Origin: Lytechinus pictus
Lineage: Eukaryota
Direction of reading: 5' to 3'
NCBI RefSeq assembly: GCF_037042905.1
Contig: NC_087248.1
Location: 11,470,001-11,534,000 of the forward strand
Length of the DNA: 64,000 bases
Shown one piece after another: positions 1,947-34,956 of this stretch; the first letter of the stretch is position 1; each line of letters opens with the position of its first letter. The notes below the pieces were generated by a model. It was not told the DNA's origin and searched no databases. It was given only the letters and a program-made list of their open reading frames with translations. The position numbers and the translations under genes are program-made.

Positions 1947-4900
1947 ATGGCTCAGAAAACGGAAGATGTGGCTTGTAAAAGTGGAAAGAAAACCGAAACA
2001 TTCAGCTTTGGTCCATGGACAATAACAAGTGTGAAAGCACATATATCAAAGACAGATGTAGTAACCAAGTGAGTAGCATAAAACTTTGTTTGGAGACTTT
2101 TTGAATAATGTAATCGGAACTTCGGAATGTCATTCGTTATTGATAATTAAATGTTGGACATTTCCATTACCGGTGTGTGCGATTTTTAAGCATGCATGCC
2201 GTATTGCTTAATCACGTTTCTGTGTTTCCTCCGCCTCCGGATACCGCGGATGATTTTGTCATACCTTTATACCTTTATACCTTTATACCTTTATACCGCA
2301 TCTACTGGAAAAATACAGTTGTTCCTGCAGTCAAGTTTCCAGGTCTATCTTGTTGTCTTCCTATCTTGTTGTCTTCCTAGCTTGTTGTCTTCCTAGCTTG
2401 GATAAGTTCGAAAACTGAGTCTGTGCTATTTGTGCAATGTGCTGTGCCAATTAATGTATTGGAATGAAATAGGCACTATAACTACATGTAGGTCCGATCT
2501 TATTGCGTTTATAATTTTGAATAGTATTATGTTGATTCCTTTTCCCCTCAAAGGAGGGAGGGAAGGGGCAAAGAGAAGGATAGGAAGAAGAAGGGTGAGG
2601 AGGAAGAGAGACAGACAAAACTAAATCACTGTAGCGGTCGCGCCCCTAGCTTGACCACTAGGTTGATACCTGAAGCTAGAATATAAGGAATAAGTCACTA
2701 ACCAGTATTTTCCTGGAGTGATGTCCTAGTTCCTGTCTATTCCGTGTGAGTTCAGCTTCAAATACGATGATCCAAGGGATCCAACGTCCTCCAGCGTCTA
2801 AAAGGGGTCCAGCGCCATCTCCCGGTGGAAGACCTATATGGGGGGTGGGGTGACTTACTACAACAGTCCCCCCCGTTCTATAAAACTCGGTCCCTCGAGT
2901 TTCCAACCCAAATGGACACTATCCAAACCAGACAAAGGGAGGAAAAAATTTTCCACTCCCTAGGCACCCCAACCAGGAGACCTTATCTCCCGGCTGGGCA
3001 TGAGTAAATACAAGCCCATTTCAAAATTCCCTTTGGTCTTTTATGTACACAATGCTCCTTAAAATTTGGCAAAAAGTACTTATGCAGCATTGTGCTGTCC
3101 CAAGTCTGCATTCCCAAAAATTAATTATAATTTAATACCCGTAATCAGCCATAAACAAATCCTGTGTCTTATATAAATAAAAACTCCAAAACTATCCAAA
3201 ACACTTGGCACAACTGTGCTAAAACTTGTTCAACACTTTAAACTTCAAAAAACCTGTAACATGAAAAACGTTTAAACCCGTAATAACTCTTATCAACCTA
3301 TTTATTTACACTGGAGGTAGAATTTTTGGGTCCATACCTCCCTGAGGTTCTTTAAAAAACCCATACAAAACATATAGAACAATGGTATATATATATAAAA
3401 ATATAAAACCCATACAAAAACCCATATCCCAGGAGGGTCCCCCCTTCCCAGAAAGCTCCACTTTCCCATAGCAGTGGGCTGCCGCTGGCCCTCCCCTGTC
3501 GAGGCACCATCTTACCCGGGCTGTGCAACACATAGCATTCCCGTTCGGTTGAGAGACTGGAGCACCAGTACCCAACCTAGGTCCCCCAGGTGCAGGAAGG
3601 GGGCGTCAGCGCTGCCATTATGCAAAAAGGGCCATTTAAAACACTCCCCTCCAAAGCGGACCATGAAGCATTTCCTACATGGCCTAAATATACAAAAAGA
3701 TAGACGAAAACATAGACAACGAACACAAAAGACACCAAGAGGAGGCGACCCAGCTGGTCTCCTCCTGTACAGAAAACATGTAGGGTCCTAAACGCGCTAA
3801 CCTAACCCCAAAAAATGCAAAGGGAATCAGAATCCCTTCGTAAAAAATGGAGGACAAAGTTCCTCCATTCCCCTTTCCTACCCTCACTACACCCCATAGA
3901 GCGCCAGATGATTAATCCGAGCACGCTCCATGAGGGTGAGGAAACCTATGCGCCTAGCTGAGGCGACAAGTTCTCCCACCTCCCCGATGTATGCAGGGGT
4001 CAAACATCTGACCCCCCTACGGGAAGATATGGAGAATCAGTCTCCAGCAATAACTTGGAGAGAGGAACCTTCCTCAATGCGTCCAGCTGCTCCCCGGTGA
4101 AATGTTTCACCTTGCAGCCGAAGCTGAAGTAGGTATTGGGGAAAGTTTTTCCCCAAGCCTCGACCTCTAGAGGCCCAAGAGTACAACAGTGGATATGAAC
4201 CCGCTGATGTCTGTTGGCCCTCGTCCTGGTCGCTTCTCTTACAATCCTAGAGGGGACATCGGAAGTTTTTCCGTCTTCTCCCCGCAGATGCAGTATCAGG
4301 ACTTTGCCAGTAGCCCCGATAGTACGGCTGCTTGCCTGTAATCTGGTAGAGGAAACACGATCCAGGTGAACCCATTTTTCAACAGGGAGCGATCCCGTCT
4401 CCCTTCCCTTCAATTTTTTCAGTTTCCCCCAGCACCTCAGAGCAGGTTACCTTAAGGTGCCTATCAGATGGGTTTACAACATAGAGCTCTGTCTTCCCAG
4501 CCCTGTAAACCGAACTGGGAACTAGGAGCAGTAAGCCATCCTAAGGGTTAAACATGAAATCCCCTAAACGTTGGTCTAAAATGCCGGTGATTCGCTTGAG
4601 TGCATTCGGGGGAACAATTACTCGCTTGTGCAAATGAACCCGGGCAATCTGCCGCCCAGGGTCATCACTATACCAAAGTGGAATCCTCTGACCTCCCAAC
4701 TGCATATGCGGATCTTGGAGGTGAATCGCAGCCTTGCGCTTGCTGAGGAAATCTAACCCCAGGAGCATATGATCAGCTATAGGGGCTACATATACTTCCT
4801 CCGAGAACGTCTGGTTCCCAAGCTCTATGGAAAGGGGACCGACAATTGTCCCTCTCATCTTCATATCCCGTCCCGCTGCATGTAGGATCACTTCTCTCAG

Positions 4901-7900
4901 TTTAGGGGGCTGGGGGTCTAGTGACTGCAGGAGCCTATCCGAGATGATGGACACCTCGGCTGCGGTATCTACAACTGCGCTTACTGGCTGCCCCCCTATA
5001 ACAACTGAGACCTTGAGAGTAGAGCGCGACTCCAACCTACACACCACTACCTCTTCAATCTCGCTTGCACACCCAAGCCCAGGGAGAGCATCTGGAACTG
5101 ATTCCAGAATGGCTTCACCCAGGTCTGATATTCGGGTGTTCGAGGGAACTGGATCCCTCGCCGCAGCCTCTACATAAGTAGCTATTCCGGTTACATTATT
5201 CCCTGGGACTATCAGGCGCTCTGACACGCCCTCTGTTATTCCTTCAGATGAGCCTACAGATGGCCCCTCTGGGCTGCTTGCTAGCTTGGAACCCTCTATT
5301 TGGCCTCTGGCGGTGGGGGCCGGGGGCTGGCCAGCTCCTCCGACCCGCTGGAGTTTTCCTCCTCCTGGTCCCCTACAAAGGAAACTTGTACCTTGGCCCT
5401 GTTTTCCTGGACCAAAGGACAATTGTTCCTGTAGTGGCCAATCCCGCCGCACTCATAGCACCGGTCCCGACCGGGTGACCTCCCGCGTTCACGCGCTGGT
5501 TGGGGCCTAGTCTGGATAGCCTCCAGGACCTTCTTGAGGTCCCGTTCCAAACCACCCAGACGCTGCAGATCCCGCTCGATGTGGCCCAAGCGTTCATCGG
5601 TCTTGCGTTCGAGGTTCACCAACCTTTGCTCAAGTGCTGCATTGTTCCCTTGGGGTAGTTCCACCTTACGGACCTCCCCTTCATTAGCCTTAGACACTGC
5701 CTTGGGACGCCCGTACATTGCGCGGTGCACGTGTTGGTGCCACTCAATATACTTAAGCGCCTCATTAACAGTAGATGGATTACGCGTAAGCGCATGGCAC
5801 CCCGCCTCTCGGTTGAGGGCGCCCTGGCACAAGCGAAGGACCGCCTGTCTATTCGGGTAAGGGCCATCGACCCCTGGAAATGCACGCGCCGCTAGTTGGA
5901 GTACCCGGTCGGCCCATTCCGGCAGGGACTCGGTGGGTCCCTGCTTGGCCGCCACAAACTCCAGCTGAGCAGATTCGGAAAGACCTTCCTCCCCGAACCT
6001 GTGCTGCAGCCTGGCTATCACGTCTGCATAAAGCAGATTGGGCTCTTGATCTAGGACCATTAACAGATAATCTTCTGCCTTCCCTTTCAGGCCCCAGTAT
6101 AGCTGGCTTACGCGCTCCGCGGCATTCCAATTGTGGTGATCAGCAAAGGCTGAGAACTTCCTAAAGAAAGCCCTCCAGTTACCCTTGCCGTCGAAAGTGA
6201 GGGACTTTGGCAGCGTGCAATAAGGTAACCCACCGCCAGTCCCCCTTCCCGAGGAAGCACTAGAGTTCGCCGGTGACGCCGCCGGGCTACTTGGCGGTGA
6301 AGATGAACTGTGCTGGGCTGGGCGTGTCATACCCGCCCGCACATTTCTTGCGCTGTAGTCTGGGGTAGGGGGTGGGGCTGAGGACCCCCTCCCATCTCCT
6401 ACCCTGGTCCTTATCCCCTGCCTCCCCCCCAGGGAGGGATGCCTAGCGGGGAAGTCATCACCCCCGGACCACTCGCTGGAATCACCACTTACCTGCCCGC
6501 ATCTATTCGCATGGGCCTCATTAGCCTCTTCACCTATTAGATGCCTGGGTCTGACCCTCGGCTCTACACCACCCCCCATGCCTGCCCCTCGGGTGCTTGG
6601 GGGCTGGTGCCCCCTCTCTCCCCGGAGGTGCGAAGGGCTGGCGCCCCAGGACCCACTAGACTGGCTTGCCGCAGGAGGTGGGTAATGATCATATGGGTAA
6701 GCACCCCCTGGCCCCGCCCCATTCTGGTCGGGTTCCCTGAGAGGGGTGCTCATGGTGGGGCGCCCCCTGGGAGTAATGAAAATACTAGACTCTCCCCCCT
6801 GGGTGCCCCCCGAAAAGTCCACTCGTGCGGCTAGTTCTCGATTGTTACACAGCACTGGACTGCTCTCAAAAAGCTCAGGGGTTATCTCCCCATGGTCCAG
6901 TCTGACCCCCTGAATTATCCCGGCTAGGGCTGAGCTTAGCCCTAGCGACCTAAACTCCTCAAAGGAGCACACATTAATGGGGATTTTCTCTTCCCCGTCC
7001 ATGTTGGGTTTACCCTAATTGGTGTTATCCTAGCAAGGTTAAGTTAGGCCCAATACTGAGCCCAACCAAACCCCTGTTGAAATTATCCAAAAGCTATTCT
7101 AAAACTAGGTCTCAATCTAACCCAATCTAGCTTATTAAATTCTTTCTTTTATTTTCTTTTGGCAACTAAATTACAAAAAAGGTCCAAAAGTATACCCCAA
7201 TCAGTTTATGGTTAGGCACAATAATAAGCCCGACCAAAAACCTACTTAAATTTATCCCAGAGAAGCTATCCCAAAAAATTAGGTCCAAATGCAGACCCAA
7301 TTTATTTTATAACAATTCTTTTAATTTTAGCAACTAAAATTATAAACCCGGTACAAGTCCAAAAATATACCTTTAACAGTTAATGGTTAGGCACAGTAAT
7401 TAGCCCGACCAAAACCTGCTAAAGTTATCCAAAAAAGCTATCCCAAAAAATTAGGTCCAAATGCAGACCCAATTTATTTTATAACAATTCTTTTATTTTT
7501 TAGCAACTAAAATTATAAACCCTGTATAAGTCCAAAAATATACCTTTAACAGTTAATGGTTAGGCACAGTAATTAGCCCGACCAAAAAACCTGCTAAAGT
7601 TATCCAAAAAGCTATCCCAAAAAATTAGGTCCAAAAGCGAACCCAATTTATGGTATAAAAGTCTAGCTTTTATTATTAATTAGATTAGTTTAGTCCGGCT
7701 GTTGTTAATAGTTTGCGCTAGCACTGCCAAAAAGAATGATTTTAGTTCTAAAAATATTTATATTAACCTCTAAGCCTAACTTGTCTTTTATTAATTTACC
7801 TATTTATTTTATTAATCCTCGAAGCTGGTTCTATCACACTGGAGTCCAAGTTCAGCACACACAATATTTCATGCACACCGAGTCACCCCACACTCTCTCT

Positions 7901-10900
7901 CAAATAATCTTTCTTTTTCTTTCTTTGATTTTTTTTTTTTTTTCTTTCTCTGAACTCCCCACTACAGTGAGTGGGTGGGTTCACACACTACGCCACCTAC
8001 GTCGCAAACACCCAACACTGTATATCCACACACACACTTCCTACCCCACTCGAAAGTGAACGAGTGGGGCTGCCCGTGTTCTAGATCTAATCTAGATATG
8101 CCTAACAATAAACCCAACTTCGAGGAGCAAAACAACACGCTAAAACAACCACTACACCACAAATATACTAATCGGAAAATAGTATGATTAAAATCCTACC
8201 TATTTCTGTACTTTCCACACCTTCCTCTGCTCAAATTGGTTCTCAAATCAATTTTTTCGTCCGTAAAAATGAATTGGTCGACGATTGCTCAACGATGGAG
8301 GACAAGATGGCGTCTGTGCCAGCAGTGAGGTCGGAACGTATCCCTCCGCGGCAGCCCCGCTACGTGGATCCCGCTCCGTGCCGTCTTCCGGCCCAGCCGT
8401 ACCACCCTTACCCTTCCGCACCCTGCACCCTAACACAAATAGTGCAATCACAAATCACTCACAAAACGACACCAAAATCACCAAAACAACCAAAAACACA
8501 CGTAAAAAATACAATCACACTAACTTGAAACACACAGCCACAACAAGAAACAGAAATAAATAGCAAACAACGACAACAAACACACAACTCCACGACATGT
8601 GTTCTCCTTCTCCTTTGTGGAAATTTCCGTCACGGTACCGGAACTACCATCAGTCCCCGCGACGGAAACCTCCAAAAAAGAGAGGCGACGACTATCGAAA
8701 AAATGTCCCAAGTCAAACTTACCTAGTCTAACTCGGGACACACATACACACCACCTTCCCCGATATTCACAGAATATATATATAAATCGACAGGACCCTA
8801 ATAACTGGACCCTATCTACCAAAATCACCCCAATTTCCTCCCTGATTTTACCCTCTCCAGCGGCGACCGTTTCCCCCCACGCAGCGGGGCATAGGGAATT
8901 ACACGTCCGATGCGAATACGGGGGGCCTTGCTCACCGCGAGACAATCAATCAATATCCCAATTTTAATTTTCAGAAATTGGCCTAAAATGCCCACAAAAG
9001 CAGGCACAGTCAGGCTCGCAGCGCCACTGTAGCGGTCGCGCCCCTAGCTTGACCACTAGGTTGATACCTGAAGCTAGAATATAAGGAATAAGTCACTAAC
9101 CAGTATTTTCCTGGAGTGATGTCCTAGTTCCTGTCTATTCCGTGTGAGTTCAGCTTCAAATACGATGATCCAAGGGATCCAACGTCCTCCAGCGTCTAAA
9201 AGGGGTCCAGCGCCATCTCCCGGTGGAAGACCTATATGGGGGGTGGGGTGACTTACTACAACATCACTCACTGTAGTTTTACTAATACTACTAGTAGTAG
9301 TACTAGGCCCTACTGAAAAACTAGAAGTCTAACGTTAGATTGGATTATCATTTGGATGAGGAGGAAGTAGGAAACTCTGTCTGAGGAGGAGGGAGACTTT
9401 ACATAGACTGCCAGGAGGAGCATAGTCATGGCCGATAAATCGGTCTATTTCGGTTAGGGATATGACTAGACAGCTGGCAGCCGTCTGTTTCGAGGAGTTT
9501 TTTAACTTTTTTTTTTTTTAAATTTCTCCTCGTACACAGACGGCTCGCTAGCGTGCAGCCACCATTAGGGGACTTGCAATGCAAAATCCCCCCGTCGGGG
9601 CTCTTCAATTTTTGTCTTTAATGAATAAAAATTTTGAAAATTAACGCGACCAAAATGCAAATTAATATTCCCTCTTGGCATTAATTGCCAAAAAACAGAG
9701 AAAAATCAAGTTAAAAGGAACAAAAACAGTGACTTACCTCGGCTGTCGCGCAAATTCACTTCCCCGTTTTATCTGATCTTAAGTACATAAACATATTGCC
9801 ATTGAGTCCCCTGTACAGATCGCGCTAGAACTTCGGTCTCTGTATTTGGTGAGTGAAGCCAACGGAGTTCAGCTGAACAACCAACATAACAGAGACCGAA
9901 GCTTTTGGTCTAGGATATGACTAGCCAGGCGGCTTCTAGACGACTAGAGAGTGAAACTCATTTACTAACGTAAGGTCACTCTCATACGAAGCCAGGGCTT
10001 CCGTCATATACTTGTGCGTGTACCACCAAAAAACCTGAAACTTTCGCCCCCGAGATTTCTACTTTCTTTCTAAAAGATCTAGCCCTAAATCATGTACATG
10101 AGATAAAACTTCATTTCCGACATTTCTACGCTCTCGTTGTTATTTTTGAACAAGAATTCATCAAAAAAATGAGAGAAATATTGTGTAAAGACGGAAGAGA
10201 CTTGCCCGATGTTTACGCCGCCATCTTGTTTCCTATTGTTCTTCGCCAACGTTACAGACGCGTGCGTCGGGTAACGTTGGCGAAGAACAATAGAAAACAA
10301 GATGGCGGCGTAAACATCGGGCAAGTCTCTTCCGTCTTTACACAATATTTCTCTCATTTTTTTGATGAATTCTTGTTCAAAAATAACAACGAGAGCGTAG
10401 AAATGTCGGAAATGAAGTTTTATCCCATGTACATGATTTAGGGCTAGATCTTTTAGAAAGAAAGTAGAAATCTCGGGGGCGAAAGTTTCAGGTTTTTTGG
10501 TGGTACACGCAAAAGTATATGACGGAAGCCCTGGCTTCGTATGAGAGTGACCTTACGTTAGTAAATGATTTTCACTCTCTAGAAGCCGCCTGGCTAGATA
10601 TGACTAGGCTGAGAACTCTGGCCCGGCTCTATCCCTCCTTGTCAACAGATCGATGTCTCGTAATGCCAATGGTGGAGGTTTGTCAAAAGCTAGTTAAGAC
10701 TCACCCACGGGTACATTACCGCCGCCGTGCACAGGATAACCACTGGTAGGAATTTGCAATAAGTTTATTCCTCTATTGTAAAAATTAGAAATAGGTACCT
10801 ATTTAAACAAAAAATCGCATTTTGATTGTTGTTTGCGTAATTTCCACCGCAGTATTAAGGATCGGACGGAGTGTCTTGGCTGAGATTTGGGTTAAGCGTT

Positions 10901-13900
10901 TAAAATCCCTTTTTATAAATACGTTCGAGCACATTTTTAAAATTAAATTAAATGATAAGATGTAGATGCATAAATTTAGTATATTGTGAAGATTTTGGCG
11001 TGTTTCATTCTCTCACATTCGTGTGATGAATGAAAACTTTAAAATTCATTATGAAATGACATGCATTGTGCGAGGTTAGTACAAGTACAACTAACCTCGC
11101 ATGCTTGTGTGAGTGGTTAAGACTAGTTACTAGGTCTACAGCTAACCTTATCTACAGCGTCTATGGCCCTATGGCATAGCCTATGGCCTGGGGAAAAGGG
11201 TGAGCTACCCCACCCTCTTCGATTTCATGCAACTTAGTTCTTCTACAGTGTAATGGGCAAAAAAGACACAAGAACTTTAATTAATTAGATCTTACTTAAT
11301 CAAAATTTTGTATTTTCCAGCAAATATGTCGCAAAGATGGTAAGCCGATTATATTAGTAATAATTGGCTTACCATCTTTGCGAAATATTTGCTGGAAAAT
11401 ACTTAATTTGATGATAAACACAAAGGGTCAGGTTCTTTGATCATTTCTAATACAGCTTTAGCATACAATTGTGCCAGCCAAGCACGTTCGTGTTCCCATT
11501 TTCAGTGCATGAATATTCATTTGCAATTTGCAATGCAGCTCTTTGTAAGTTACATGTAGGCCCTACTGCTAAAATAATGCCTTGCTTTGTGTTATCCCAT
11601 AGAAATCAATCTTTCAGTGTTATTGTTTTTCATAGTGCCCTAGAATCTAATGGTGTATTTGTTATTGTTTTTGTTTTTTACAATGTATAGGCATGAAGAG
11701 GAATTAGAGCTCCCTCAGCTACCAGAGATGACGTTTGGAGATAATGTCCTTCGCATCCATCATTCCGGCGGGTTTGGGATAGAGTTCAACACGATAGATG
11801 CTCTCAGACTGGTAGATAACAAGCATGATACAATGAAAGTAGCGGCCGCTGATACATGGCAGGAAGCAAGGTAGAAAATTTATTTGAACATTAATGGGAA
11901 ATCTGACCATGTTATAGTGATCCGAGGAGAGAAATGTGGAAAAACAAATTGAGAAAATTGAATGCAATTGGACAAAAAATTAGAAAGTTACAGCGTAATT
12001 GGAAAACCTTTTGAAAATTAAATCTATTTTTACTGAGGCCGTAAAGGTGAATAGAGACTTGCTTTTCTATAAATGAAATAAAAGAAATTTAAATATAGAT
12101 AAAGGTACAGGTGTATAAATTTAAGAAATTAAGAAAATAAAGAATTAGAAATTGGTACCATGAAATCCATCTTTTAATTAACTCTCAGCTGTTTCTCACT
12201 CTTTGTCTTTAATGGGTAAATTATTTGACATCTCCCTTCTATTTTGTATTGCAATACAGTGCGTCCCAGAAAAAACGAAACCGAGATTTAGCGATGATTT
12301 ATCATAACTTAATCATAAATAAAATAGACAAATGACCTACCAATGTAAAGCTTAGAATCTCCTCTTTCATCTGGTATTACTTAGATTATTCCTCATTCAC
12401 GCATGATTGAGCAAAAACAATTCGAAGAAAGGATGCCAAAAAGAAAATCACATGACTAAAAAGTTCAATATCTTCTCTTTTCTTTGATACCTAAATCACA
12501 GAAAATGGTCAAGTAGTAAAAAAGTTACGATCCCTCGAAACAATGCTTGTATTTCCATAATTTCATTGAATAAACGTGTTGTCACCGGTTTCCCACTGAA
12601 GCTATCGCACGGTAACAAAAGACTTAATGCATGGCTGAGCGTCAATAAAACGGAGTGTCGAGTGAGTTTGAACGCTAGCCTGTAAAACCTCTTCATTTTA
12701 TGAAATTATTGAAATTCAAGCCTTATTTCAAATAACCAGAACTTTGTTATTTCTTGACCATTTTCTGTAATTGAGGTATCAAATTAAAGAGCAGATATTG
12801 AACTTTTTAAAAATGTGGTTTTCTTTTTAAAACCCAGATACGGCCCGCCAAGTGACTTTTTGGTATCCCCTTTTCAAATTGTTTTTGCTCACTCATGCGT
12901 GAATGAGAAATAATCTAAGTAATTTCAGATGAAAGAGGAGATTCTAAGCTTTAAAATGGTAGGTCATCTGTCTATTGTATTTGCGATTAAGTTATGATAA
13001 ATCATCGATAAATCTCGGTTTCGTTTTTTGTGTGACGCACTGTATATGTATTTTCTTTCAATATATTCGCCCAATGTATATGTCGTTTGTGTTTGTATAT
13101 ATACTTTATATCATTCATATGTACAGCCAGTGGAGGCCAAATTTCTATGTATTTTATCATGGATCAATAATAAATGAATCTGAATCTGATGCAAAGTGCA
13201 AACTGCAATTTTGAAGTAGATTTGGTCACATGATCACAGGGACAACTCTTTTGGTCTGTCTGATGTACAGTAGCTGGGATGAGGATGCCAAGGCTAAAAC
13301 AGCCAAGTCCCCTTTTCCCTAGCATTGTCCTCAAAATGAAAAATAACTCAGAGTAATGATTTTTTGTTTGTTTGTTTAAGTTTTACAAATCAAACATGGA
13401 GAGAGAGGTAAAATGTTTAATATAAGGGGGGGGGGGAGGAGCAGCTGGCATCAAACAGGTGGCGGGTGCAATTCAGTTCTTGCCCCCCCCCCTCCCCCTC
13501 ACATAAAAATGTATTGGACTGTGAAAAGAGTTGGTTGATTTTTGCTTTCAATAATCTGACCATGTGATGATGTGTCTACATAACAATTATTACATTCAAA
13601 GTTTTGGTTATAAATTTTTTTCAAATATAATTTTTGGGGGTTGATGAATTTTAATTGCAACTTCATCATCATTTGTGTTTTAAGGAGTGATTGTGAGTTT
13701 ATCTCAAAGGTGATAAAGCCATTTGATTGGACATACACAACAGACTACAAGGGTTCCATCGTGAATTCAAACGGAAACCATTGTAAGGTAAGTTGCAACA
13801 AGAAGGGCCTGCTCATGGGGGAGGGGGGGGGGGGCTTTTTCATAAAACTGTGTGTTACCTGTACCTGAGAAATTTCCAATCTATTAGAAATATGTTGTTC

Positions 13901-34113: not shown

Positions 34114-34956
34114 CAGAGGCGTCGATCCTGGGGGGGGGGGGGGGGCGATCGCCCCACCAATTAAAATATTGGGGGGGGGCAAACATCATTTGCCCCCCCC
34201 CCAATAATTCCGGATATGCATTAAAAAAAACAAGATTGTAATGTTCAGCAAGCGAGATTGAGATACACAACTCGTTCTTTATTTAAAATCGTGCTCAAAA
34301 TGTCCGCTTTTTAGATTGGAATATAACAATTTTCAGCTCGCGCTTCGCGCTCGCATCATTTCTGTAGCAAAAACCCATAATTTTCATGATTAAATTGGTG
34401 AATGTAAATGTCCCGTTTTCAGTTCTAAGCCTCAAAAGAACTGCTTCAATTTGCAATCATCTTTTCTTGGATATATAGCTTGTTCTTTATCAAAAACGTC
34501 CAGTAAACTCATTTTTTCAGATCGAAATATCAAAATTTTCAGCTCGCGCTTCGCGCTCGCATCTATTCTTCTTTTAGATACAAATCTTAATCATTGGTAC
34601 CAAAAATGCTTAGAATATCAAGTTTTCAGCTCAGAATATAAAAAATTTGAGCTCACTCTCGGCACTCGTACTATCTGTGTAGTGAGATACNNNNNNNNNN
34701 NNNNNNNNNNNNNNNNNNNNNNNNNNNNNNNNNNNNNNNNNNNNNNNNNNNNNNNNNNNNNNNNNNNNNNNNNNNNNNNNNNNNNNNNNNNNNNNNNNNN
34801 NNNNNNNNNNNNNNNNNNNNNNNNNNNNNNNNNNNNNNNNNNNNNNNNNNNNNNNNNNNNNNNNNNNNNNNNNNNNNNNNNNNNNNNNNNNNNNNNGCGC
34901 CTTTGGAACGTTAATGATTTTGCCCCCCCAATCTGAAAACTGGATCGACGCCCCTG
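34114..34956. mobile_element. hAT-like non-autonomous element, 8 bp TSD (spans an N gap)
   Basis: TCAATGTG|CAGAGGCGTCGATCC ... GGATCGACGCCCCTG|TCAATGTG; internal CTCGCGCTTCGCGCTCGC motifs. Confidence 0.85.

Follow-up and report, generated by a model that had tools for sequence, protein, structure and literature searches.

We examined a 64,000 nucleotide (nt) stretch of the Lytechinus pictus genome (hereafter the window; NCBI RefSeq assembly GCF_037042905.1, contig NC_087248.1, positions 11,470,001 to 11,534,000 of the forward strand), in which a long terminal repeat (LTR) retrotransposon bearing a piece of a TatD-type nuclease lies on the minus strand at 2630-9263. A direct-repeat search of the window revealed that 2627-2865 and 9025-9263 are 100% identical; these repeats, trimmed to TG..CA ends, are the LTRs. 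Comparisons were made with two longer relatives, L001 from Lytechinus variegatus and L076 from L. pictus, and with P0164, an intronless 862 amino acid (aa) protein of L. pictus encoded by the third open reading frame (ORF3) of L076. The features of the window element are as follows.

9264-9267, with its partner at 2626-2629, no strand: 4 bp target-site duplication (TSD) TCAC, read directly
9028-9263, minus strand: 5′ LTR, 236 nt, TG..CA, 100% identical to 2630-2865
9010-9026, minus strand: primer-binding site TGGCGCTGCGAGCCTGA, one base past the 5′ LTR, identical in L001 and L076
7038-7674, minus strand: tandem repeats with units of about 174 nt in the 5′ untranslated leader, also in L001 and L076
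5296-7002, minus strand: gag, 568 aa, with Pfam matches to zf-CCHC_6, zf-CCHC and PNMA
4541-5452, minus strand: start of pol, aspartic protease only, with a premature stop at its end (Pfam gag-asp_proteas, Asp_protease_2 and RVP)
4320-4367, minus strand: deletion junction with a 48-nt filler, standing in for about 6592-12156 of L076
4018-4319, minus strand: first piece of the TatD remnant (Pfam TatD_DNase), corresponding to P0164 residues 718-821
3887-4017, minus strand: C-terminal helices of the TatD remnant in a shifted frame, with a stop at 3887-3889, by alignment to the P0164 tail
2866-3886, minus strand: 3′ untranslated region, ending in a G-rich polypurine tract and aligning with the 3′ regions of L001 and L076
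2630-2865, minus strand: 3′ LTR, 236 nt, 100% identical to 9028-9263

The polypurine tract AACGGGGGGGAC, a run of seven G at 2868-2874, is two bases before the 3′ LTR and is conserved in L001 and L076. The element has several features in common with Ty3/Gypsy elements (Metaviridae), namely direct LTRs bounded by TG..CA, a 4 bp TSD (within their 4-6 bp range), a primer-binding site by the 5′ LTR, a polypurine tract by the 3′ LTR and a CCHC gag. The pol order of protease (PR), reverse transcriptase (RT), RNase H (RH) and integrase (IN) is found in L001 and in the Joint Genome Institute (JGI) metagenome contig L005; the window copy keeps PR alone. Judged by its LTR features and the domain order of its relatives, the element at 2630-9263 is of the Ty3/Gypsy type, as originally predicted. 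The window LTRs share 99.6% identity with those of L076. Because the two window LTRs are identical and the TSD is clean, the insertion is recent. A tRNA scan found no tRNA genes in the window, hence no primer tRNA was assigned. An Rfam scan of the window gave no matches, and no further copies of the element occur in it.

A leader of about 2 kb separates the 5′ LTR from gag. The Gag protein combines a CCHC zinc knuckle with a PNMA-like capsid region (Pfam) and is 89% identical to L001 Gag at the amino acid level, and the protease ORF aligns with L001 pol residues 2-247. A helix-hairpin-helix (HhH) domain had also been predicted for Gag. The Gag N-terminus of the relative L005 does match HHH_3 (E 8.7e-8), and the window Gag aligns to it with 30% identity, but the window Gag itself has no Pfam HhH match even at E 10. 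The HhH prediction has some support in this, and the N-terminus of the window Gag may hold a diverged HhH. Look-ups for the window Gag and for protein P0006 returned no exact-match record; protein P0037 has a record, which comes without DNA. The leader and gag, and the ORF3 end and 3′ region, are 97-98% identical between L076 and the window, versus only 88% for the protease segment (4368-5651). This lower identity suggests recombination between subfamilies.

The ORF at 4413->4000 (minus strand, 137 aa) holds the motifs LHLR, HIHC and YFSF, which had been read as those of a TatD nuclease. The domain is genuine, as the ORF matches Pfam TatD_DNase (PF01026) with an E-value of 1.8e-10 (41.1 bits; cutoff 27) over profile positions 121-208 of 253. 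Its sole sequence match in the Protein Data Bank (PDB) is Escherichia coli YcfH (1yix). The TatD tail, which contains LALYGV, is read in a different frame (4033->3890). Alignment with an intact copy puts the frame switch at 4017/4018, and the tail stops about 1 kb from the polypurine tract. Thus the identical LTRs, gag-pro, the TatD motifs, the tail in a second frame and the position of the stop, all described in the original prediction, are seen in the window. From residue 33 to residue 134, the fragment has 100% identity to P0164, and 35 of 37 tail residues match the P0164 tail. By sequence comparison, this agreement of fragment and tail with P0164 is far beyond chance. Pfam returned no match for the frame-shifted 48-aa tail by itself, and its identity rests on the P0164 alignment. 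The two TatD pieces were analysed separately. The predicted TatD reading frame holds from 4319 onward, where ORF3 homology begins, but not upstream of this position, as the first 32 codons of the 137-aa ORF are derived from the junction or from pol.

Of the six TatD metal ligands, the window copy retains three, all in the first TatD piece: the His of LHLR, the His of HIHC and the Asp of ETD. The HxH (DSHFH) and GEIGLD metal-binding motifs were removed by deletion. Because the HxH and Glu ligands are lost and the frame is broken, the remnant is catalytically incomplete and cannot be active.

The window copy is colinear with L001 and L076 to about pol residue 300 and resumes at about P0164 residue 718. 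Approximately 5.5 kb are missing, from just past the protease to two-thirds into ORF3, and with them RT, RNase H, integrase, the PHD finger that follows integrase, and ORF3 residues from about 1 to 717, including the N-terminal and zinc-knuckle domains. The first ~40% of the TatD domain is deleted and the C-terminal ~60% is left. A search for the source of the 48-nt filler in the element and the window found only 14-17-nt matches to pol, at chance level. As read from these alignments, the window copy derives from a three-ORF Lytechinus family by internal deletion and is both young and non-autonomous. Given that a deleted copy has identical LTRs and a clean TSD, autonomous relatives must have supplied proteins in trans.

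In these respects the original prediction needs revision. It placed TatD at the 3′ coding end of the element; in the family this domain is not the 3′ end of pol but forms the C-terminus of a distinct ORF3 of 770-1100 aa, which lies where env would be, between pol and the polypurine tract. It took the window copy as the architecture of the element, yet this copy is without RT, RNase H and integrase, and its TatD part is truncated, frame-broken and short of three ligands. This copy did not itself capture TatD, and its sequence is a remnant left by deletion from an ORF3-bearing family. Lastly, the suggested role in cDNA proofreading or repair is a guess. The window should thus be annotated with a dead TatD remnant within a non-autonomous element, and with no host gene at this position.

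A HMMER search with the 137-aa ORF gave 565 matches at E ≤ 0.001 among 1.84 billion representatives. Many of the top matches are proteins of 600-1100 aa matched at their C-terminus. The best match, P0001, is a 772-aa protein of L. variegatus, annotated as “uncharacterized” and encoded without introns. The DNA around P0001 (L001) is a complete 12.2-kb LTR element with the following features.

1413-1648 and 13375-13610: LTRs of 236 nt, 98% identical to each other, with TSD TGCA
2985-3505: leader repeats of 174 nt
3658-5400: gag
5424-9584: pol, with protease, RVT_1, RT_RNaseH, Integrase_H2C2, rve and a C-terminal PHD finger
10001-12319: ORF3, which is P0001

Matches of L001 pol to Integrase_p58_C and SH3_Tf2-1 were below the Pfam cutoffs. 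A PHD finger (Pfam E 3.4e-8) is present at the integrase end in L001 (9424-9584, pol residues 1337-1382) and in the pol of L005, at the place where chromoviruses have a chromodomain. By analogy, this suggests that integration may be targeted with guidance from histone tails.

The L. pictus locus of P0164 (L076) is a 14.8-kb element with TSD AGCC, identical LTRs and an intact ORF3. Frame breaks in its pol (5674-9826) are either real disruptions or assembly indels. In Diadema setosum, the element L002 has LTRs that are 99.5% identical to each other, and its pol, ORF3 and gag share 64%, 41% and 39% identity, respectively, with those of L001. The intact relatives have a common layout on one strand, with gag, then PR-RT-RH-IN-PHD, then ORF3. 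The gag-pol-ORF3 order recurs on the metagenome contigs L005, L006, L016, L018, L020, L030, L032 and L039, and IN-PHD lies directly upstream of ORF3 at L004, L009, L010, L024, L025, L037, L044, L048 and L065. Both pol and ORF3 are uninterrupted at six loci. The original prediction had suggested looking in full-length copies for TatD behind integrase, and this is where the TatD ORF is found in L001, L002 and the contigs. We are highly confident of the structural description, i.e., a family with gag, pol (PR-RT-RNaseH-IN-PHD) and an ORF3 with zinc knuckle and TatD domain, of which the window copy is a deleted member. On three metagenome contigs (L017, L022 and L023), gag and pol recur after ORF3, an arrangement suggestive of a multi-copy element assembled in tandem or in permuted order.

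Intact ORF3 proteins start with a domain of low conservation (13% mean identity) and contain variable, proline- and serine-rich linkers. A K/R-rich basic patch resembling a nuclear localization signal (NLS) is followed by an invariant CxxC...HxxxH knuckle and, behind it, by a helical domain in which the motif NSPAxLxHWR is nearly invariant. The knuckle plus helical domain was modelled with a predicted local distance difference test score (pLDDT) of 90.6 and a predicted template modelling score (pTM) of 0.85. A Foldseek search of PDB and BFVD with this model gave no match below E = 1, and a word-based search with the knuckle-helical domain alone returned three Lytechinus proteins only. No signal peptide or transmembrane (TM) anchor was found in ORF3, nor any hydrophobic segment outside the folded domains.

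The TatD domain of P0164 was modelled by AlphaFold2 (AF2) with pLDDT 96.7 and pTM 0.94, and the predicted structure has the TIM-barrel amidohydrolase fold. Its top 17 Foldseek matches in PDB are all of the TatD family, including YcfH, TatD, YjjV, TATDN1 and TATDN3 (E 1e-15 to 1e-11, TM-score 0.64-0.77, identity 12-27%). Full ORF3 proteins score 81-134 bits across the whole TatD_DNase profile. The six metal ligands in P0001 are His511, His513, Glu603, His639, His672 and Asp723, and of 80 long homologues, 77 retain all six (H, H, E, H, H, D); these homologues were picked by the ETD motif and the knuckle, so the unbiased test concerns the other five ligands only. With NCBIfam models, the ORF3 TatD falls in the general YchF/TatD subfamily, far below its cutoff. 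In four of five proteins tested, the score for YcfH (PRK10812) equals or slightly exceeds those for TatD and QatD, with all scores below the equivalog cutoffs.

Some ORF3-like sequences occur outside this arrangement. A stand-alone ORF3-like gene (P0040, 1111 aa) was found in L. variegatus (L003:10001-16204, CM031018.1) together with a degenerate tandem copy, and neither gag nor pol lies within 10 kb of it. In the alignment, Arg takes the place of His639 and Asn that of Asp723 in P0040, which may be an ORF3 that has been domesticated or is decaying. A TatD of the ORF3 type is also part of other fusions (P0002, P0216, P0218 and P0258). P0002 has a YqaJ/viral alkaline exonuclease-like N-terminus and a TatD fragment, and others join TatD with zf-CCHC.

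Named hosts of ORF3 homologues include sea urchins (Lytechinus, Diadema and Strongylocentrotus), hemichordates (Ptychodera and Glandiceps), bivalves (Pinctada, Mytilus and Saccostrea), gastropods, the brachiopod Lingula and an ostracod. Homologues were also detected in metagenome-assembled genomes (“MAGs”) of clam symbionts, where they are probably host contamination. Comparison of the window with L001 gave ratios of nonsynonymous to synonymous substitution rates (dN/dS) of 0.115 (gag), 0.197 (protease) and 0.19 (main TatD piece). The 42-codon tail has a value of 0.49, and summing the counts of both TatD pieces yields 0.23. These values indicate that the TatD end was under purifying selection before the window copy was truncated.

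Trees of pol and ORF3 from eight loci have three of five splits in common (the Lytechinus pair, the urchin group, and L005 with L006), and these are the best supported in both trees, with 94-100% by the Shimodaira-Hasegawa-like approximate likelihood ratio test (SH-aLRT). There is one moderately supported conflict, with 89% in the ORF3 tree versus 71% in the pol tree. In the TatD tree, a branch supported by 100% SH-aLRT separates 69 ORF3 TatDs from 24 TATDN2-named, tick, snail and bacterial-type TatDs. The ORF3 TatDs do not nest within a host TATDN2 clade and are apart from the TATDN2-named proteins of Amphiura and Nephila. The tree is consistent with a single old acquisition from a YcfH/TATDN2-like source, with root and donor not established. 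Because full-length relatives carry ORF3 inside the LTRs, downstream of integrase and under purifying selection, the ORF3-TatD is a trait of the lineage and not a one-off capture. The predicted accessory module is thereby borne out for the lineage, and both the separation of the ORF3 clade from TATDN2-named and bacterial-type TatDs and the dN/dS of 0.19 contradict a neutral capture from the host.

To our knowledge, enzymes added to the gag-pol core are rare in LTR retroelements. Known additions are dUTPase, a second RNase H, a DEDDy exonuclease and a GDSL esterase, each of which points to a pressure on the replication cycle. The present family differs from other Ty3/Gypsy elements in its third ORF, the PHD finger on integrase and, in some members, the HhH-like Gag N-terminus.

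By analogy, the nearest conceptual precedent is ORF3 of the Juno and Vesta LTR elements of bdelloid rotifers, which encodes a DEDDy 3′-5′ exonuclease or a GDSL esterase (PMC5408684). Both are non-env ORF3s encoding a hydrolytic enzyme with intact catalytic residues and no TM segment, and a 3′-end nuclease has been proposed for Juno/Vesta (PMC5408684). However, TatD is a TIM barrel and not DnaQ-like, ORF3 has an additional knuckle-helical domain, and there is no sequence relationship. The hosts differ as well, with the TatD-ORF3 family in marine deuterostomes and lophotrochozoans and Juno/Vesta in bdelloid rotifers. Retroviruses, Tat/Athila and Odin have a second RNase H domain (PMC9040795). 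Together with the present family they show that LTR retroelements have repeatedly gained an extra nuclease module, which there has an RNase H fold inside pol and here is a TatD in a separate ORF. Odin was considered as the identity of the element and rejected. Troyka LTR retrotransposons are sea-urchin elements that are abundant as non-autonomous copies, with CG..CG termini and 3-bp TSDs (PMC12440569). The window element shares with them the sea-urchin host and the non-autonomous derivatives, but its TG..CA termini and 4-bp TSD led us to reject this identity.

Among cellular proteins, ORF3 TatDs share the fold and metal ligands of E. coli TatD, YcfH and YjjV and of human TATDN1, TATDN2 and TATDN3. 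Bacterial TatD removes nucleotides from the 3′ ends of single-stranded DNA and RNA in a Mg-dependent manner, enzymes of the YcfH/dtd3 branch deacylate D-aminoacyl-tRNA, and human TATDN2 is a nuclear protein that uses its long N-terminal region to bind R-loops and breaks down the RNA strand in them (PMC10711561). ORF3 resembles TATDN2 in being a long protein that ends in its catalytic domain and may bind substrate with its N-terminal part (PMC10711561). Unlike cellular TatDs, ORF3 TatDs are below every NCBIfam cutoff, form a separate clade, are intronless and lie inside LTR elements. Full-text literature searches for TatD in connection with LTR retrotransposon, Gypsy, Ty3, retroelement or ORF3 returned no relevant paper (Repbase and Dfam were not covered). 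We thus found no prior description of a TatD ORF3 in a Ty3/Gypsy lineage in the literature searched. In public annotation, ORF3 proteins are named “uncharacterized,” “TatD” or “YcfH-like.”

We consider it very probable that the window copy is a deleted member of the three-ORF family, in whose intact elements ORF3 would serve as an accessory nuclease. How the nuclease would act is more tentative. In intact elements, ORF3 would be translated from its own, probably spliced, message and would reach the nucleus or the replication complex via its basic, zinc-knuckle and helical region. There it may apply 3′-end exo- or endonuclease chemistry of the TatD type, by analogy with its cellular relatives, to the nucleic-acid intermediates of the element itself. 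Candidate substrates are the RNA strand of RNA:DNA structures, cDNA 3′ ends and the end of the tRNA primer, and such trimming would increase the yield of integration-competent cDNA. We put this mechanism forward as a whole, from message and targeting to the trimming of intermediates, as one conceivable route to which we give somewhat less than even weight. With similar reserve, we suggest that a multi-phylum Ty3/Gypsy lineage with HhH-like Gag and PHD-tailed integrase might depend on a TatD nuclease of its own, acquired once from a YcfH/TATDN2-like gene and long kept. Its knuckle-helical domain would deliver the nuclease to RNA:DNA intermediates, to the primer tRNA end or to the nucleic-acid defences of the host. 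If true, this would be a new enzymatic step in the replication of LTR elements.

Several observations weigh against this interpretation. ORF3 is encoded outside Gag-Pol, so its packaging into particles would be conjectural, and the knuckle-helical domain is without a structural relative, so that its role is a guess. The pol of L076 is split over three frames relative to that of L001, and no fully intact L. pictus master was seen. Outgroups in the TatD tree were limited to returns of a word-based search, with TATDN1 and TATDN3 not included. Finally, branch lengths in the ORF3 tree are about double those in the pol tree and the linkers are long and disordered, a pattern that also fits a protein for host interaction or counter-defence.

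In this counter-defence alternative, a nuclear ORF3 nuclease would degrade nucleic acids with which the host restricts the element, for example small-RNA precursors; variants are the removal of surplus cDNA or hybrids that trigger innate sensing, and the repair of deaminase-induced abasic sites in cDNA. The separate ORF that evolves faster than pol, its long variable linkers, the NLS-like patch ahead of the zinc knuckle and the conserved catalytic residues are all in keeping with it, and the TatD-family nuclease QatD acts in a bacterial anti-phage system, the QatD model scoring ORF3 like that of bacterial TatD. No host-binding module is recognisable in ORF3, however, and sequence alone cannot separate this role from that of a replication helper; we regard it as unlikely, though as the most serious of the competitors. 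Far less probable is that TatD acts on the tRNA primer, deacylating or trimming its 3′ end to permit extension. This idea draws on the best sequence matches, which are to YcfH (PDB 1yix; PRK10812), on the “YcfH-like” names, on the canonical tRNA-type primer-binding site of the element and on the activity of YcfH/dtd3 on D-aminoacyl-tRNA (PMC10711561). On the other hand, every NCBIfam score is well under the equivalog cutoffs, the structural matches are spread evenly across TatD subfamilies, and other LTR elements do without such an enzyme.

The position of ORF3 between pol and the polypurine tract is that of env, which would accord with an env-like or structural protein in which the TatD fold is catalytically irrelevant. 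We find this very improbable, given that there is no signal peptide or stretch of transmembrane grade (the maximum Kyte-Doolittle 19-residue mean is 1.3-1.8, with peaks inside folded domains) and that the six metal ligands are conserved in 77 of the 80 homologues. Least credible of all is a one-off transduction of a piece of host TATDN-type mRNA during reverse transcription, followed by neutral decay. The fragment is indeed intronless, partial and frame-broken, and some short relatives are named “YcfH-like” or “TATDN2” by NCBI. But full-length elements, each with ORF3 inside its own LTRs, occur in three urchin species and on many other contigs, and the fragment aligns colinearly with their ORF3; its dN/dS is 0.19 and not about 1, and the ORF3 TatDs are monophyletic and apart from TATDN2-named proteins, including that of the echinoderm Amphiura.

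A TatD conserved with its catalytic residues intact across echinoderm, hemichordate, mollusc, brachiopod and crustacean elements implies a useful step of nucleic-acid processing or counter-defence, one that is missing from other elements or provided to them by the host. Elements with ORF3 offer a natural, selectable setting in which to study enzymes of the YcfH/TATDN2 type. Many invertebrate gene models annotated as “uncharacterized” or “TatD,” and those in symbiont genome bins that probably contain contaminating host DNA, are explained as retrotransposon ORFs.

Regarding the surroundings of the element, runs of N occur in the window at 34691-34896, 47316-47508 and 59357-59517. The LTR element is flanked by inverted-repeat arms at 239-679 and 9466-9912, with segments of 92-199 nt that are 85-99% complementary, suggesting from their arrangement that it inserted into a foldback element or one bearing terminal inverted repeats. 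Just downstream, at 9944-10582, is a 312-nt palindrome with 99% complementarity and a 15-nt spacer.

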